Part shown: piece by piece, positions 17,953 through 40,546 of the stretch
Layout: every line of letters begins with the position of its first letter
Numbering within the stretch: position 1 is the first letter of the stretch
DNA from: Prasinococcaceae sp. CCMP 1430
Taxonomy: Eukaryota > Plantae > Prasinodermophyta
Assembly: GCA_013416795.1 (NCBI GenBank)
Contig: RQSC01000020.1
Span: forward strand, 1 to 40,546
Length of the DNA: 40,546 bases
Reading direction: 5' to 3'
Program-made: the position numbers and the translations under genes
The notes under the pieces: generated by a model
The model's input: the letters and a program-made list of their open reading frames with translations, nothing else
Database searches by the model: none
What the model was told of the DNA's origin: nothing

Positions 17953-20900
17953 ATGTCAGCGACCTTGGCCTCGATCGGCGCGGCGGCCGATGCCCTCGAG
18001 GGTCAGCTGGCGGCGCTGAAGATTCTCGACGGCAACGCAGGGCAGTGGCCCGGCGTCACCGAGGCCGCCGAGGCGCTGCGGGCCGCCGCCGAGGCAGCCG
18101 CCGCCGAGGCGCAGCGCGAAGCGCTCGCCGCGCAGCAAGCGGTCGCAACGGCCGGCCAGGATCACGCGGACGCCGAGGCGAGCCGCGCAGATGCTGGCGA
18201 GGCTCGAGCGCAGGCGCGCGCGGCCGAAGAGCGCGCGGAGGCCGCGCGTGCCGATGCCGCCTCCGCGCGGCAGGAGCGCGACGCCGCGCGAGCGGAGGCG
18301 AGCGACCTCGCCGAGGCCCTCGAAGTCACGCGCCAGCAATTCGCTGATGAGGAGGCTCGCTCGGGCGAGCTCGAGAAACAGCTGGCGTACTCCGAGGGCG
18401 AGCTGGAGGGGCTGCGGCAGGCCGCGGCCGAGGCCGCTGCCGCGGCCAAGGCCGCCGAGGAAGAGTCAGAGCGCTGCCGAGCGGCGGTCGACGCGTCGGC
18501 CGCGGTGGCGAGCAGCGGGCAGGAGCGCGTGGAAGAACTGCTTGAGGAGCGCGCGCGCCTTGATTCTGAGCTCGAGGCCGCCAGGAAGCGCGACCAAGTG
18601 CATGCGGCGCAGGTGGCGGCGCTCAAGAAAAGCCTGGGCGACGCGACCAACGCGTCGGCGTCGAGCACCGCGCGCTGGTCCAAGGATCTGGAAGCCACAC
18701 AAATCAAGCTCGCTGCGGCGCTCGAGCGTGCCACCAAGGCGGAGGAGCGCGCGGAACACTTTGCCTTCGAAGCGGACAAGTCCAACGCCGCCGCGCTGGC
18801 CGCCGCCAACACCACCGAGCGGCTGCGGCGCGAGGACGCCGACAAGGTCAAGCGCTGGGGGGAGACGGTCGCTGGCCTGCGCGAGGCGCAGGGCGGGCAT
18901 AAGGCCGAGATAGCAAAGCTCAAGGTCGAGCTCTCCACCGCGCAGAAAGCCGCCTCGGAGGCGGTGACCGTACGCAAGGAGCGCGACGACCACTCGCTGC
19001 GCATCAAGGCGCTCGCCATCGACCTGCGCTCGTCCAGGGCGGACGAGCAGCGCGTTGCTGCGGATGCGGAGAGCCTGAAGGTCGCGCTCGACCGCGCGCA
19101 GAGCGATTCGTCCGCTGCGGCCAAGCGCTGGAACGAGGAGATCGACGCGCTGCGCGCGTCATGCGCCGACGCCACGAAGCGCGCCTCGCTGGCCGAAGAG
19201 GCGCTGGCATCGCAGCGTTCGGCAGCGAAGAAGGCCAACCTCGAGGCGCACGCGAAGAGCAAGGCGCTCGCGAGCTTGCAGACGGATGTGGCGTCAACCA
19301 CCAAGCGCTGGTCGACCGACGTGAGTCGTCTCAAGCTGCGCTCAAGGCCGCCGAGGCCAAGCGGGACACGGCAACTGCCGAGGCGATGCGGTCGATGGAG
19401 GCAGAAAAGGAGGCGCTCCGAGCGAAGGAGGCGGCCGAGCAGGCGCTGGCGCTTGCCCAGGCGGCGAATGCGCAGGCGACTCGACGGTGGCACGCGGACG
19501 TCCGGCGCGCCAAGGACGACACGGCCAAGAAGACCGCCTCCGTGGCAGGCCTGGAGGCGGAGCTCGCGGCGGCCGCGAAGACCCTCTCGCAGGCAGAGGC
19601 CGACAAGGTGAAATCCCTGCTGCAGGCAGAGACCGGCAAGGAGGCCGCGCTTGGGAAGCTCAAGGCCGACATAGAGATGCTCAAAGGCGCGCTCGCACGC
19701 CAGCACAGCGACCACGCGGTGTCTGTCAAGCGTTGGGGAGACGACGTGGAGCGCCTCAAGCGTGAGCTCGCCAGCGCGCGGGGCGAGGTCACCGACGCAG
19801 AGAAGCGTGTGGCGGCGGCACAGCACGCCATGCGACAGGCTGGCGACTCGCGCGCCGCAAAGGAGAGGGCTCTGGCACAGATTCAGGCTGAGTCGGCGGC
19901 AGCGATCAAGCGCTGGTCAGGGGAGAATGTGGCGCTCAAGAAGAAGCTTGCTGCCGCGGAGACCTCACTCGCAAGGCAGCGTCAGCTCGCTGCAGCAGCG
20001 GACAAAAAGGCGGCAACGGCAACATCAGGTTTCGAAAAGGTGAAGCAGGCGCACGAGGAGGCCACCAGCACCGCCGCCGCGCGCACCGCGAGGTGGGGGA
20101 AGGAGGTCCATTCCGCAAAGGCGCAGGTCGCCGGTTTGCGTGAGCGCCTGTCCTCCGCCGAACGCGAGCGAGACGCGCTGCGCGAGGCTGCCTCTGAGCT
20201 GCGCGCTAGATTGGCCGCGTCGGATCAGGCCAAGGCGTCCGCGCAGGACACGCAGGTGAGCGCGAGCGCCCAGTGGTCGGAGCAGCTCAGCCAAGCCACC
20301 GGGCGGTGCGCGTCGCTCGAGTCGCAGCTGAAGGCGTACACCGCCGAGGCAAAGGAGCGCGACTATGAGCTGCAGGTGGCAAAGGAGGCGCTCGCGGCGC
20401 GCGATCGCGAGCTCGCCAATGAGCGCGCGGTTGCCGAGGGCCTCATGGTCGACATGCGCGCAGAGCAGGCCAAGGTGAGTGCCCTGCAATCCGAGCTCAG
20501 GGAGCAGGCCGCCGAGGCGCGGGTGCACGCCGCTCGCTACGAAAGGGATGCCGCGGTGCAGGCCGCGATGGCTGGCAGCTGGGAGCGAGAGCTCGCCAAG
20601 TCGGAGGCCGAGCGGCGGGCGATGCGAGAGCGCGTCGACCGCGCAGAGGCGGAGATGGCCGAGTTTCGTCGGGTAGCGACCAAGGGCATCGAAGCGGCGG
20701 CAGTGACGCACATGCACGCCGCGAGGGGGCGCACGCCAGGCAGCGCGAAGTGGCCCTCGAAGCCCCAACGAGCAGAGAAAGGCGCGCAGCCGCTCGCTGT
20801 CGCCGACGCCAACGCGATGGCCGGCGTGGGCGGCGCCAAGGGCAGGCTAAGCACAAAGGGGGCGCAGGCCGGCGCAAATGCAGCCTGGGCCGACGACGGC

Positions 20901-21131
20901 GAAGACTGGGGCAACGCCGCGATGGTGTCGTTGGCGAGCACGCGCGACGCCATCTTGCCGCCCATCCAGGAGGCGCGCGCCCGGGACCCTGCAGTCACGG
21001 CGGCGGCACGCAGGCGGCCGGCGCGGCGCGTGTCGTCGGCGCCATCTGAGGCGAGGCGTTTCGGCTACCAGCGCGGCGGCCTCACGCCAAGTCTGCCACC
21101 TGAAGAGCCCTTACAGCCGCGCTGGCAATAA
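17953..21131 (+). CDS. Long Ala/Glu/Lys/Arg coiled-coil protein (~1060 aa) with [KR]-R-W repeats; -1 frameshift near 19335
   Basis: ORF 17953-19335 continues in another frame (AAG/GCT GCG CTC AAG GCC) to TAA at 21129-21131. Composition, codon bias and the Trp periodicity continue across the shift. Confidence 0.75.
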
Positions 21132-36639: not shown

Positions 36640-37152
36640 TCACCACCTGGCGAGTTCTGCGTGTTTCTCGTCGAGCTCCTTCTGCACCTTCTTGCGCCGG
36701 TAGAAAATAGCGCAATCCCTGTTGCTGCACAGCACATCCTGGTGAAGCGTACCCGAACAGCTCTGACATTGCGTCCACAGGCGAGAGAATTGCTCTTCGA
36801 GGTCGTTAGCGGCGCTCAGGCTCTTGTAGTAGATCTCCCCCGCGCGCGGCGAGCAGTTGGGACAGAGCGCGCCCTTGGCCGCAGCGCCCGACAGCGGCGC
36901 CTTGCAGCCGAGGCATTTGGCCTGCACCTTGGCGAACCGCATGATCCCACCGCCGGACATGCTCGGCGTCGAGATGGTGATGGCGCGCGTGTGATCGCCG
37001 GTGAGCAAGCTCTGCGCGTTTTTGAGACAAGGGTCGAAGATGCGAAGGAGGGGCGCCTTGAGCATTTCCAGGTAGTGCCGCGTATCGAGCGGCAGGTTGT
37101 GCTCGAGCGCATAGATGGGGTCCTCGGCTTTCTCGTACGCCTTGGCGCCCTT
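36640..37152 (-). CDS. POLD1: DNA polymerase delta catalytic subunit, C-terminal 170 aa only (cut at N37153)
   Basis: AYEKAEDPIYALEHNLPLD..HYL, LLRIF, GDHTR, CysA (CLGC...CPNC) and CysB (LWTQCQSC...QDVLCSNRDCAIFYRRKK). Confidence 0.93.
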   Translation of the reverse strand, partial: KGAKAYEKAEDPIYALEHNLPLDTRHYLEMLKAPLLRIFDPCLKNAQSLLTGDHTRAITISTPSMSGGGIMRFAKVQAKCLGCKAPLSGAAAKGALCPNCSPRAGEIYYKSLSAANDLEEQFSRLWTQCQSCSGTLHQDVLCSNRDCAIFYRRKKVQKELDEKHAELARW

Positions 37153-37153
37153 N

Positions 37154-37793
37154 CCCCCCGCCCCCGCCGCCGCCGCGCGGGCCGGACCGCAGGTGGCCGG
37201 CGCGCCGCGCCGGGTCACTCGCCAAGAGACCGGGTCTACCCTCGAGCTACCCGTGGCTACCACCGCGACTGCGACGAGAGAGACCCGCTCCCATCGCGCA
37301 TTGCCCCGGTCCATCCCGCGATCGATCCGAGCGCCGCTCCCATCATCTCCTTCCTTACCGTTGGTGCCCAGCCAGCAGATACGCAGAGCATGTGCCATGC
37401 AGACAGGCCCCCAGCCAGCCCTGCAGGCAGCATGCCGTTGGTGGGGGTGTGGGCGGACGGGAGCCTCCGTCGAGGCGGCCCGCCGGACGTCCGTGCGCCG
37501 TTTCGTGGGCCGTCGCCCCTCCTCGCGCCGGCCGCCTTGGTGTCTGCACGCTGTCGCGCGCTCCTCAGACGCCTCATTGACGGCAAGGCTTCCAACACAT
37601 GGCGAGCGGATCTTTCGACAAAGCTCCTCGATGCCATTCGCAATGACCTCAAGCTGCAGCAAATCCCTCGCTGGGACGCTCTTAGCGCCCAGGCTCGCAG
37701 CAAGCTGCAGTTCAGGACCGGCGGCACCTTGCTGCTTTCGTGCCGACGATACGAGGCACGCAGCGAAAATGAGTTGGCGACGCGTCGCGCGAA
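37154..37793. other. 640-bp unassigned segment bounded by single Ns
   Basis: Lower GC skew and a different style from the flanks. The plus frame gives a protein-like stretch (LSTKLLDAIRNDLKLQQIPRWDALS) unrelated to POLD1 or FAM98. Confidence 0.4.
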
Positions 37794-38353
37794 NCGGCGG
37801 CCGCGCGTATCAAATCGCGGCGCCGCGCGCGATCGGTGCGATCCGCACGCGCGCGCGCGCGCCAAGTGCGCGCGCGCGTCTGCGCCCAGTTAGGGCTGAA
37901 GACAGGGTTCGTACCCACCGTCCCGACCCCACGCACATGCACCGTGCGGGTGGTGTGCCGTGCGCCGAGTCGCGGGTGCGTCGGCGTCGCCCTCACGCCC
38001 TGCCCAGGCAACCAAGGCGCAAGGGCGCGTGTCTCCCTCTGCGTGTGCGCGTGCGGGTGCGGGTGTGTCTCCGCGTGCGGGTGCGGGTGTGGGTGTGGGT
38101 GTGGGCGCGGGCGTGCGCCCGCCCGTGGGTCCGCGCGCCTGGCTCTGTCGGTCGGTCGGGGTCGTCGTCGCCTCCCCTGGCTGGGTGGTGCTGGCTGGCT
38201 GGCTCCCCCCGGGGGTGGCGTGGCGTGGCGGGGGGTTTGGGTTGGCGGGTGCGCCGCGCGCGCGCCACGCGCGGGCCAAACACACGCTGTGTCAGCGCCG
38301 TGCGCTGGCAGAAGCGCCAGCTGACTCGGAGGCCCACAGGCAGGCGCGCGCAC

Positions 38354-39076
38354 CTTGATGACCATCTCGCGCCGCACCCGGTACTCGCTAGTGAGTGCGG
38401 CGTGCACCTCGCCGAGGAGCGCCGTCTGCGCGTCCGAGAGCGCCGTCGGATCCACGAGCCGCCGCATCGCGCCGCTCTCCTCGGCGCGAGCTGCGGCGCC
38501 CGCCGTCGTGTCGGCTGCCGCGCGCAGCGCGGCGGCCGCGCTGGTGTTCAGGGTCTGGTCGACACCCGCCGCGGCCGCCACGCGGCGCACGCACTCGGCG
38601 GCCATCGCCGACTCGCTGGTGTCCCCCGACGAGCCCGTGCGCACGGACGCCGCCTGCGCGAGCATTCTGCGTGCCTGCATGGCCGCGACGAGCTCCTCGA
38701 TGGCGGTGATGGGCACGGGCTCGTTCGCCGCTATCGATTCCGGCACTCCCGCCTTGACAGCGGCCGCGATGAGCTCCGCGCGCATCTCCGCCGGCGTCAT
38801 GACTTCGACCATCTCCTTGAAAGACACGCCCGCCGACACCGTCTCCTCGGAAGACACCGCCGACACCATCTCCTTGGAAGACGCGCCCGCCGACACCAGC
38901 AGGGCGACTGCCATCCTGCGGAACGCGCGGCTCCCAGGGCCGGCGAGGTCGGCAAGCTCAGGCCCGGTGCACGGTATGTCGCAGTCGGACAGCCGCTCGG
39001 CGAGCTCGGCGAGGCGGTCGTCCGCAGACACCGCGGGCGACATCGCAGGCGGTGCCATCGCTGACACCGATGCCAT
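38354..39076 (-). CDS. FAM98: FAM98-family protein, first exon; the remainder is lost beyond the gap at 37794
   Basis: L..VHAALTSEYRVRREMVIK|gtgcgc matches the FAM98 motif L..EY..RR.ML.KR. The downstream sequence is an intron-like (GT)/(GC) microsatellite. Confidence 0.7.
38810..38896. repeat. Three-copy 27-30 bp in-frame minisatellite inside FAM98 exon 1
   Basis: catctccttgaaagacacgcccgccgacac / cgtctcctcggaagacaccgccgacac / catctccttggaagacgcgcccgccgacac. Confidence 0.8.
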
Positions 39077-39290
39077 CGCGCGCGGCCACGCCACACCAAG
39101 CACAGGCTATGCTCGCTATGCCCCCGACCCCCACCCCCTCTTCCCCGCGCGCACGCTCCCCAGCTCCCCGCACGCGCAGCCCGACCCCCGCCGCAGCTCA
39201 CCCCGCCTGTGCGGGGACGAACGCCCCCCCGGCGCGGGCGCCGCGCGCGGCCCCCTCCTCGCCCGCCCGCCCACCCACCCGCCCGTNNNN

Positions 39291-39950
39291 AAGGTGCCGG
39301 GCCACATCGCCCGCATGGAGGCCGCGCGCGCCAAGGCGAACGGCGTGGACCCCCGCGCGGCCGCCGCGCGCAACGCGAGGCCGTCGTTCAACTCGGCGCC
39401 GTCGTCCGCGCCCGCATACACCCCGCCGCCCGCCTCGCCCACTCCGGCGGCCCGTTCCTACGAGCCCGCCCCCCAGCGCAGCGGACGGAAGGTGCCGGGC
39501 CACATCGCCCGCATGGAGGCCGCGCGCGCCAAGGCCAACGGCGTGGACCCCCGCGCGGCCGCCGCGCGCAACGCGAGGCCGTCGTTCAACTCGGCCCCGG
39601 CGGCCCCGCCCGCATACACCCCGCCGGCCCGGCCTACGCCCACTCGCGCCCCCGAGCGGAGCTACCAGGCCGCGCCCCGCCCGACCGGCGGCAAGGTGCC
39701 CGGCCACATCGCCCGCATGCAGGCCGCCGCCGCCAAGGCCGCCAGCCCGGACCCGCGTGCGGCTGCGGCTCGCAACGCCAGGCCGTCGTTCAACGCCGCG
39801 CCCTCGCAGGCCTCGTACACCCCCCCGCCGCGCTCGACTGAGAACGAGTTCGCGGCCCGCGCTGCGTCCGTGTCCTCGCCCGCCCCCTCGGGCGCCAAGG
39901 TCCCGGCGCACATCCGTCGCATGGAGGCTGCCCGCGCCAAGGCCCTCGCC
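39291..39950 (+). repeat. Coding tandem repeat, unit 198-204 bp (66-68 aa)
   Basis: Units start at 39291, 39489, 39693 and 39897 (aaggtgccgggccacatc / aaggtcccggcgcacatc). Confidence 0.92.
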
Positions 39951-39953
39951 TAA
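39291..39953 (+). CDS. Low-complexity basic tandem-repeat protein, 5' end in gap; candidate pyrenoid Rubisco linker
   Basis: The reading frame starts right after NNNN and has 3 full repeats plus a terminal fourth motif KVP[GA]HI[AR]RM[EQ]AA[RA]AKA, then TAA at 39951-39953. Strong codon bias and a TGTAA polyA-type signal at 40043-40047. Confidence 0.8.
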   Translation, partial: KVPGHIARMEAARAKANGVDPRAAAARNARPSFNSAPSSAPAYTPPPASPTPAARSYEPAPQRSGRKVPGHIARMEAARAKANGVDPRAAAARNARPSFNSAPAAPPAYTPPARPTPTRAPERSYQAAPRPTGGKVPGHIARMQAAAAKAASPDPRAAAARNARPSFNAAPSQASYTPPPRSTENEFAARAASVSSPAPSGAKVPAHIRRMEAARAKALA

Positions 39954-40546
39954 GGAGCACCAGGCAGTGAGTGAGTGGCTCGGACGGGGGATGGGCCCGA
40001 CCGTTGCTTCACGCAGTTTTCACACGTAAGCATGTCATGACGTGTAAATTAGTCTCTCGCTTCCCTCGCACCTCGCAGCGTCTCCTCGCCCGCGCCCACG
40101 GCGAGGGCCGGCTCGCAGGCGACGCCCGCGCCCGGCACCACTCAGGGGCCACTGGCGCGTGACGCCAAGTGCTCGGCCCAATGCGCGTGCGCCCCCTGTG
40201 CGATGCCGGCCGTTGTTCTCAGGCCAACAGGCTGCAGGGGGGTTCGCCCGGGCTGGAGGCAGCCTCTGCACCAGCCGAGGGGAGAGCGGGAGGCGCACGC
40301 GCCGCTGCCCTCGCCTCCGCCGCCTCCTCCTGGTCCCAATCGCGGCCGATGCCGCGCAGGTGCGCTGGCACTCGCCCCTCCCCCCCCCCCCCTCCCTGGG
40401 GGGCGCGCCCGCCTCCGCCTCGGCCTCGGCCTCGGCCTCGGCCGCGCTGCGCCCGTCGCCCCTGTGCCCGCACCAAAACCGCGGAAGGCGCCGTCTCGCG
40501 CGCACGGAACCGCACAAACGCCGCCCCGCGCGCGGCTCGCGCGGCA

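Follow-up and report, generated by a model that had tools for sequence, protein, structure and literature searches.

A candidate third Rubisco linker and tether motif system in the green lineage: a basic helix-repeat protein of the alga Prasinococcaceae sp. CCMP 1430

Pyrenoid linkers have no sequence in common between lineages, and each of them has been found afresh. According to a 2026 review, separate linkers have been characterised in no more than three species; the review adds the innate RbcS linker of hornworts and a single suggested candidate, and it mentions neither prasinophytes nor Micromonas or Prasinoderma. In Chlamydomonas, the motif of the linker EPYC1, [D/N]W[R/K]xx[L/I/V/A], is repeated within the protein and present at its C terminus, and it is shared with SAGA1 and SAGA2, where it occupies the exact C termini. 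In Chlorella, the motif of CsLinker is shared with PMST, a protein made up of an N-terminal CBM20 and six copies of the motif. For the order Prasinococcales as a whole, a pyrenoid has been described that is large and sheathed in starch. The genome paper of Prasinoderma coloniale (2020) makes no mention of pyrenoids, and a full-text literature search for pyrenoid, Rubisco or linker in connection with Prasinoderma returned nothing relevant. Here we describe the 3' end of a gene from Prasinococcaceae sp. CCMP 1430 whose product we propose as a candidate member of such a linker and tether system.

The gene lies close to one end of the stretch of DNA under study (hereafter the window; 40,546 nucleotides, GC content 70%). 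Positions 39291 to 39953 of the plus strand comprise 220 uninterrupted codons followed by a TAA stop (39951 to 39953) and form the 3' end of a nuclear gene that is real and transcribed and encodes a repeat protein. In this frame the GC content at codon positions 1, 2 and 3 amounts to 0.71, 0.73 and 0.94, which is what a coding frame is expected to show in a genome of 70% GC. Where residues are invariant between repeat copies their codons differ synonymously (GTG/GTC, CCG/CCC, GCC/GCT/GCG), and conservation therefore acts on the peptide. Sequence of the repeat protein is present in contigs of four marine metatranscriptome runs, and in the two runs compared with the window RNA contigs cover 39291 to 40064. 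RNA contigs end at 40054 and 40064, about 100 nt past the stop codon and 7 to 17 nt 3' of a TGTAA pentamer (40043 to 40047), which places the 3' UTR at 39954 to 40064; UGUAA is the poly(A) signal of green algae. Between about 40064 and about 40300 the RNA depth is zero, as it is upstream over 39010 to 39195. In the RNA run X16, contig depth, which is a rough guide only and a poor measure of expression, amounts to 88 to 262 over the repeat gene versus 6.9 over the neighbouring minus-strand gene. Independent Tara/ENA assemblies contain identical or near-identical pieces of the gene as well: the DNA encoding protein P0005 (on contig L004) is 98% identical to the window gene and that encoding P0007 (on contig L005) 96% identical to the window. 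The GC content at third codon positions, the synonymous variation, the RNA coverage and the independent assemblies together rule out that we are dealing with an artefact or a non-coding stretch. Downstream of the gene, 5.5 copies of the hexamer GCCTCG are found at 40411 to 40443; Logan contigs of the runs X1 and X3 skip 40365 to 40451, and the copy number may vary or be collapsed there.

The translation bears out the repeat anatomy which an earlier note had read from the letters of the window. Four copies of a helix motif KVP[GA]HIxRM[EQ]AxxxKA, starting with KVP[GA]HI at residues 1, 67, 135 and 203, follow one another at a spacing of 66, 68 and 68 residues. Copy 1 (KVPGHIARMEAARAKA; 39291 to 39338, plus strand as for all features of the gene) and copy 2 (39489 to 39536) are of an E-type, while copy 3 (KVPGHIARMQAAAAKA; 39693 to 39740) is of a Q-type and equals the second repeat of the relative P0003 described below. 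Copy 4 (39897 to 39950) forms the exact C terminus, ...KVPAHIRRMEAARAKALA, immediately before the stop codon, so that the protein does end on the helical motif. Each of copies 1 to 3 is followed by a second motif, DPRAAAARNARPSFN (39348 to 39392, 39546 to 39590 and 39750 to 39794), behind which come spacers that, according to an alignment of the units, vary in sequence and length, as had been claimed. Recounting the charged residues of the first repeat yields the same figures as before (10 K/R versus 3 D/E). Tandem Repeats Finder describes the array as 2.6 copies of a 198-nt period with 85% matches (score 709). Besides the first helix and the second motif, the units have in common an [AS]YTPPP element, which is present in every spacer (39420 to 39434, 39618 to 39632 and 39813 to 39830); the rest of the spacer, Pro-rich and with many AP, SP and TPPP, varies. 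In the 40.5-kb window neither the helix nor the second motif was found a further time in any frame.

A single-sequence AF2 model places helices on both motifs, at residues 4 to 16, 70 to 82, 138 to 151 and 206 to 219 for the four copies of the first and, shorter, at residues 21 to 28, 87 to 94 and 155 to 162 for the three copies of the second. One additional helix is modelled apart from the motifs (residues 184 to 193), and the remainder is of low confidence (pLDDT 47 to 67). The 220-residue fragment has a pI of 11.8 and consists of 28% Ala, 16% Pro and 12% Arg. Judged from model and composition, it is a very basic, Ala/Pro/Arg-rich and mostly disordered protein of the sticker-and-spacer type. 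Each of its units, about 67 residues long, joins a helix of 13 to 16 residues (KVPGHIxRM[EQ]AxxxKA) to the short helix DPRAAAARNARPSFN and to a Pro-rich spacer that varies. Across seven distinct copies of the first helix, 10 of its 16 positions are invariant (K1, V2, P3, H5, I6, R8, M9, A11, K15 and A16). On a helical wheel the invariant positions centre on a mean of 345 degrees, while the variable positions 7, 10, 12, 13 and 14 lie opposite at 149 degrees. On the invariant face two basic residues flank a small patch of hydrophobic ones, and conservation confined to one side in this manner is the signature of a helix that meets a partner via one face.

With EPYC1 the window protein has in common that it is very basic and disordered, that it comprises about four to five repeats of 60 to 70 residues with one short helix each, that the exact C terminus is formed by a copy of the motif and that the motif recurs in relatives, here putatively, with a starch-binding domain. 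The EPYC1 motif itself is absent, as the earlier note had stated, there being no Trp in the 220 residues and the C terminus reading ...AKALA. The two proteins show no sequence similarity, the units of the window protein carry a second conserved motif, and its role with Rubisco is a proposed one. In CsLinker, as in the window protein, helices of about 10 to 13 residues are set into disordered repeats. The binding face of CsLinker consists of two basic residues on a hydrophobic patch, and the face of the window helix offers R8 and K15 together with I6 and M9. The CsLinker helix contains ...EQREFLERKARE... and the window helix ...GHIARMEAARAKA; upstream of the helix both proteins harbour an [AS]YT(A/P)P element (ASYTAP in CsLinker), a likeness which may be compositional. 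For CsLinker as for the window family, homologues occur only in close relatives and the motif is common to a protein with a CBM20, which in the window family is a predicted one. A profile search of 1.84 billion protein representatives revealed no similarity to EPYC1 or CsLinker and returned no Chlorella protein. By homology the window protein stands outside both families; that it works like them is something we infer. PYCO1 of Phaeodactylum likewise unites two kinds of repeated element in one disordered protein (here the helix and DPRAAAARNARPSFN), but its stickers are unrelated and it serves a red-type Rubisco. The N-terminal repeats of CsoS2 in the alpha-carboxysome are short basic Ala/Arg-rich helices within a disordered protein and bind Rubisco multivalently; CsoS2 is bacterial and has no detectable homology to the window protein, which limits the comparison to analogy. 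Among look-alikes from the Atlas, EspF repeats and CsoS2_M were set aside, since scores of 0.68 to 0.69 (CsoS2_M 0.68) are too low to carry weight.

Directly before the first Lys codon the window contains an assembly gap of 4 N (39287 to 39290). A DNA contig of run X3 matches 38700 to 39286 exactly and then continues for 455 nt which are absent from the window; hence, the 4 N stand for at least 455 missing nucleotides. As the earlier note had supposed, the 5' part of the gene, and with it the N terminus of the protein, lies in this gap. Judging from contig L005 (see below), the gap may conceal a starch-binding domain and not just the transit peptide and further repeats named in that note. A tblastn search with P0001 to P0004 found neither the leader of P0003 nor the exon with CBM20 likeness in the 40.5-kb window, and nothing related to the family in the 184 nt between the adjacent minus-strand ORF and the gap. 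This ORF (37712 to 39103, minus strand) shows a weak match to DUF2465 (E 3.7e-05, below the cutoff), harbours a 30-nt tandem repeat at 38808 to 38898 and is transcribed at low depth in X16. The end of a further minus-strand ORF (36640 to 37662) we take, by eye, to resemble the Cys-rich C-terminal zinc-finger region of the catalytic subunit of a family-B DNA polymerase.

A word-based protein search identified four relatives of the window protein, to which a cluster look-up added P0007; the relatives stem from samples of Tara Oceans. Word searches with one repeat (proteins of 293 to 931 residues) or with a single 66-residue unit gave nothing beyond P0001 and P0005, and a HMMER profile of the 38-residue unit run against the 1.84 billion representatives retrieved only the protein's own kin. 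One match of the profile search, P0006, is an unrelated repeat protein without a matched stretch and was rejected. In the JGI metagenome contigs, a scan with P0003 and a degenerate DNA pattern coding for the helix both remained without match, and Pfam yielded nothing meaningful for the window protein, sub-threshold matches to IS66_C, zf-CCHC and Kinin being noise. Since the protein and metagenome searches produced only kin, the family is limited to one narrow lineage; it is small and lineage-restricted.

Within this family two architectures can be discerned from the sequences, the first of which is represented by P0003, a protein from a Tara metatranscriptome. It starts with a leader of 26 residues, among them 11 Ala, 5 K/R and no D/E, which ends VAVRAA; its arginines are spread throughout and no uninterrupted hydrophobic core is present. 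The leader passes directly into a Q-type helix, followed by a spacer and then by a unit identical to window repeat 3. We regard the leader as transit-peptide-like and the repeats-only architecture as probably linker-like. The junction between repeats 1 and 2 of P0003 occurs also in DNA of run X3 and in the two RNA runs (window position 39832 joined to 39668 with 48 letters between).

The second architecture would combine the same repeats with a CBM20. On the metagenome contigs L001, L002, L003 and L005 a CAG acceptor is followed by an exon reading VLPAGEATEYKYVHMD...HAWQPGYNQ.... Compared with Pfam CBM_20 this exon reaches E 0.0068 and 16.6 bits, the cutoff being 23.3 bits, over profile positions 50 to 86 of 97; its best PDB match is the archetype of the CBM20 family, the starch-binding domain of Aspergillus glucoamylase (1AC0), colinear over residues 61 to 107 of 108 with E 0.044. 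Each of these matches is weak and covers half a domain only, yet they agree with each other and both stop at the end of the domain. We take the exon to encode the C-terminal half of a CBM20, the remainder of which would reside in an upstream exon; such an exon was not found on L001, L002, L003 or L005. In P0001, P0004 and P0007 three to four helix copies come after the CBM20-like exon and a helix closes the protein; in the proteins from L001 to L003 this closing helix is the variant KVPAHILRMQAQAAKAHA. This layout resembles that of SAGA1, SAGA2 and PMST, in which a CBM20 is combined with copies of the linker motif: three to four helix copies in a disordered tail are what would be expected of a tether, with Rubisco as the putative partner. 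In contrast to SAGA1, SAGA2 and PMST, the CBM20 can be traced here in its C-terminal half only, at scores below curated thresholds, and starch binding is a prediction. While SAGA1 possesses a long coiled coil, the CBM20-bearing relatives have none.

Contig L005 bears on which of the two forms the window copy represents. In it the CBM20 exon is followed by a single repeat of the E-type and then by repeat 3 and the terminal helix of the window. It is 96% identical to the window over 39482 to 40546, downstream flank included; the part comprising repeat 3, the terminal helix and this flank agrees at 95.8% over 1080 nt up to the end of the window. Its upstream intron and CBM20 exon are common with L001 (2 differences in about 500 nt). 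Because this syntenic contig has the CBM20 exon upstream, the gap may hide a starch-binding domain, and it may be that the copy in the window is itself of the CBM20 form, which would make it a tether. Beyond this common part, L005 (1 to 1049) and L001 (1 to 1115) differ in their C-terminal repeats and in the terminal helix, which is KALA in the former and KAHA in the latter, and their downstream flanks bear no relation to each other; such a pattern could arise from a recent duplication, from recombination between paralogues or from an assembly chimera.

We propose, by analogy with the two green algae discussed above, that the helix is the Rubisco-binding motif of this lineage, the repeats-only form being a linker and the CBM20 form a tether; to our mind this is the likeliest of the readings, at about even odds. 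According to it, the helix face with H5, I6, M9 and A16, flanked by R8 and K15, would dock on Rubisco. In the repeats-only form several such helices on one flexible chain would cross-link Rubisco holoenzymes into a pyrenoid matrix, while in the CBM20 form they would glue this matrix to the starch sheath; targeting of the protein to the plastid is presumed. A leader followed by regularly spaced helices on flexible spacers suggests multivalent binding of an abundant partner with many sites, and since the same helix sits behind a putative starch-binding domain that partner would adjoin starch. Filters of the FLIPPer type select disordered proteins of high pI with repeated structured elements 20 to 120 residues apart. 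The window protein has these features, its elements being 66 to 68 residues apart and its pI 11.8. They are not specific, as 13 Chlorella proteins passed of which one is the linker; our candidate stands above this base rate by virtue of a motif shared with CBM20-like proteins, the leader, the C-terminal motif and its expression. Of the linker reading put forward in the earlier note, the sticker-and-spacer anatomy, the basic character, the restriction to one lineage and the transcription have stood, while its application to the window's own copy is weakened by L005, according to which this copy may be the CBM20 form.

The presence of a CBM20-like exon, as the only recognisable domain in the family, can also be understood without Rubisco. 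The family might scaffold the starch sheath or granule, the helix binding, for instance, a starch-metabolising enzyme or another granule-associated protein, and the repeats-only form would then be a multivalent adaptor for that partner. The suggestion from L005 that the window locus carries the CBM20 exon agrees with this explanation. In both green algae studied, however, a CBM20 with a disordered tail of short helices is a Rubisco-starch tether which shares its motif with the linker, and a repeats-only form that is highly expressed and very basic is more readily understood as a condensate linker than as an adaptor for an enzyme; we consider a starch scaffold of this kind unlikely, if worth keeping in mind. 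Alternatively, the likeness to linkers might be compositional only, and the disordered protein might serve the plastid or another organelle in some unrelated way, for instance in nucleic-acid or membrane binding or as a regulatory adaptor; this strikes us as decidedly unlikely. The co-occurrence of the helix with a CBM20-like domain, the confinement of conservation to one helix face, the regular spacing of 66 to 68 residues and a motif at the exact C terminus all speak against it, pointing to a specific protein partner that is bound multivalently. Such a role would nonetheless suit the high pI and the Ala/Arg-rich helices, which could equally well contact nucleic acid or acidic lipid, and it accords with the lack of homology to any known linker and with the Atlas look-alikes, which are generic repeat proteins at weak scores. 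The abundant AP, SP and TPPP of the spacers, finally, are reminiscent of arabinogalactan- or extensin-like modules, so that one might think of a secreted or cell-wall Pro-rich glycoprotein with the P0003 leader as its signal peptide. The scattered arginines of this leader and its want of an uninterrupted hydrophobic core are hard to reconcile with that idea, a pI of 11.8 and conserved amphipathic helices are atypical of such glycoproteins, and algal relatives of CBM20 act on plastid starch; we hold it to be very improbable.

A rival explanation of a different kind concerns the order of the repeats in the window, which might in part be a product of assembly, repeats 1 and 2 stemming from a CBM20 paralogue and repeats 3 and 4 from a repeats-only gene, the two having been joined across the region of the gap. 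Repeats 1 and 2 are indeed about 99% identical at the DNA level to the first two repeats of L001, whereupon the sequences diverge and the 3' flanks are unrelated; P0003 moreover joins a different repeat to repeat 3. The RNA depths of run X15 fall into two levels: 7.2 for the CBM20 exon, 7.1 for the E-type repeats (7.1 to 7.2) and 7.2 for the KAHA tail versus 50 for the P0003-type junction (B1 to repeat 3) and 36.5 for the window-type 3' UTR, repeat 3 lying with the latter (36 to 50). An assembly product would be in line with this distribution. Yet a Logan DNA contig of X1 spans 39593 to 40364 without mismatch, across the junction of repeats 2 and 3, and in X1 the depth of the P0003-type junction is zero; as this run may be the very sample from which the window was assembled, its support is not independent. 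L005, derived from another sample, another assembler and a strain diverged by 4%, has the same junction between repeats 2 and 3. At least some strains, then, have the window-type junction in their DNA, and an order created by assembly appears quite improbable to us. The two levels in X15 suggest that two transcripts occur in the sea, a CBM20 form and, five to seven times more abundant, a repeats-only form which ends like the window. Speculatively, the two genes recombine via their shared stretch 'APRPTGG-KVPGHIARM', whereby strains come to differ. Every short-read contig assembles the repeat arrays differently, which makes copy numbers minimum values and the gene count uncertain. Differences between strains, or in part the assembly process, may account for the P0003-type and L005-type arrangements.

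Further genes of the strain seem to carry the helix motif, in at least two or three sequence contexts. At loose ends of X1 DNA contigs (window 39488 to 39536), helix-like copies KVPGHIARMEAAR... continue into other sequences, namely ...KQAARAKGQGG, ...KEAARATAQGG and ...KAQGKQVGAEGR, one of them being preceded by ...AAGPPAPKPK; their depth is 324 to 411, compared with near 390 over the neighbouring gene. Helix copies in several contexts are what one would expect if more than one pyrenoid protein made use of the motif. At a distance from the repeat gene, the plus strand of the window contains long Ala/Glu/Lys-rich coiled-coil ORFs (17953 to 21131) with an element [KRA]RW[GSNH]xx[VIL] about every 60 residues. 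This element recalls the Rubisco-binding motif [D/N]W[R/K]xx[L/I/V/A] of Chlamydomonas, where SAGA1 is a long coiled coil as well, and by this analogy the ORFs may encode another pyrenoid structural protein. Pfam gave no matches for these ORFs or for the ORF downstream of the gene on L005.

Returning to the proposal that the helix binds Rubisco, what is new here is a candidate third motif system of linker and tether in the green lineage. In its full form the proposal holds that this Rubisco-binding-motif system evolved independently, with a repeats-only linker and a CBM20 tether; that the helix KVPGHIxRM..A...KA possibly docks on a surface of Rubisco unlike those used by EPYC1 and CsLinker; and that recombination between the two genes at the level of strains would shuffle the N-terminal module. 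Taken together we put this forward tentatively, its probability falling somewhat short of one half. A candidate motif common to a repeats-only protein and a CBM20 protein would make pyrenoid assembly open to direct tests in a lineage which is sister to all other green plants and which branched off before the Chlorophyta and Streptophyta separated. It would also put to the test how general the principle is by which Rubisco serves as a hub for proteins carrying one and the same motif, and would add a further sticker for the engineering of pyrenoids into crops.
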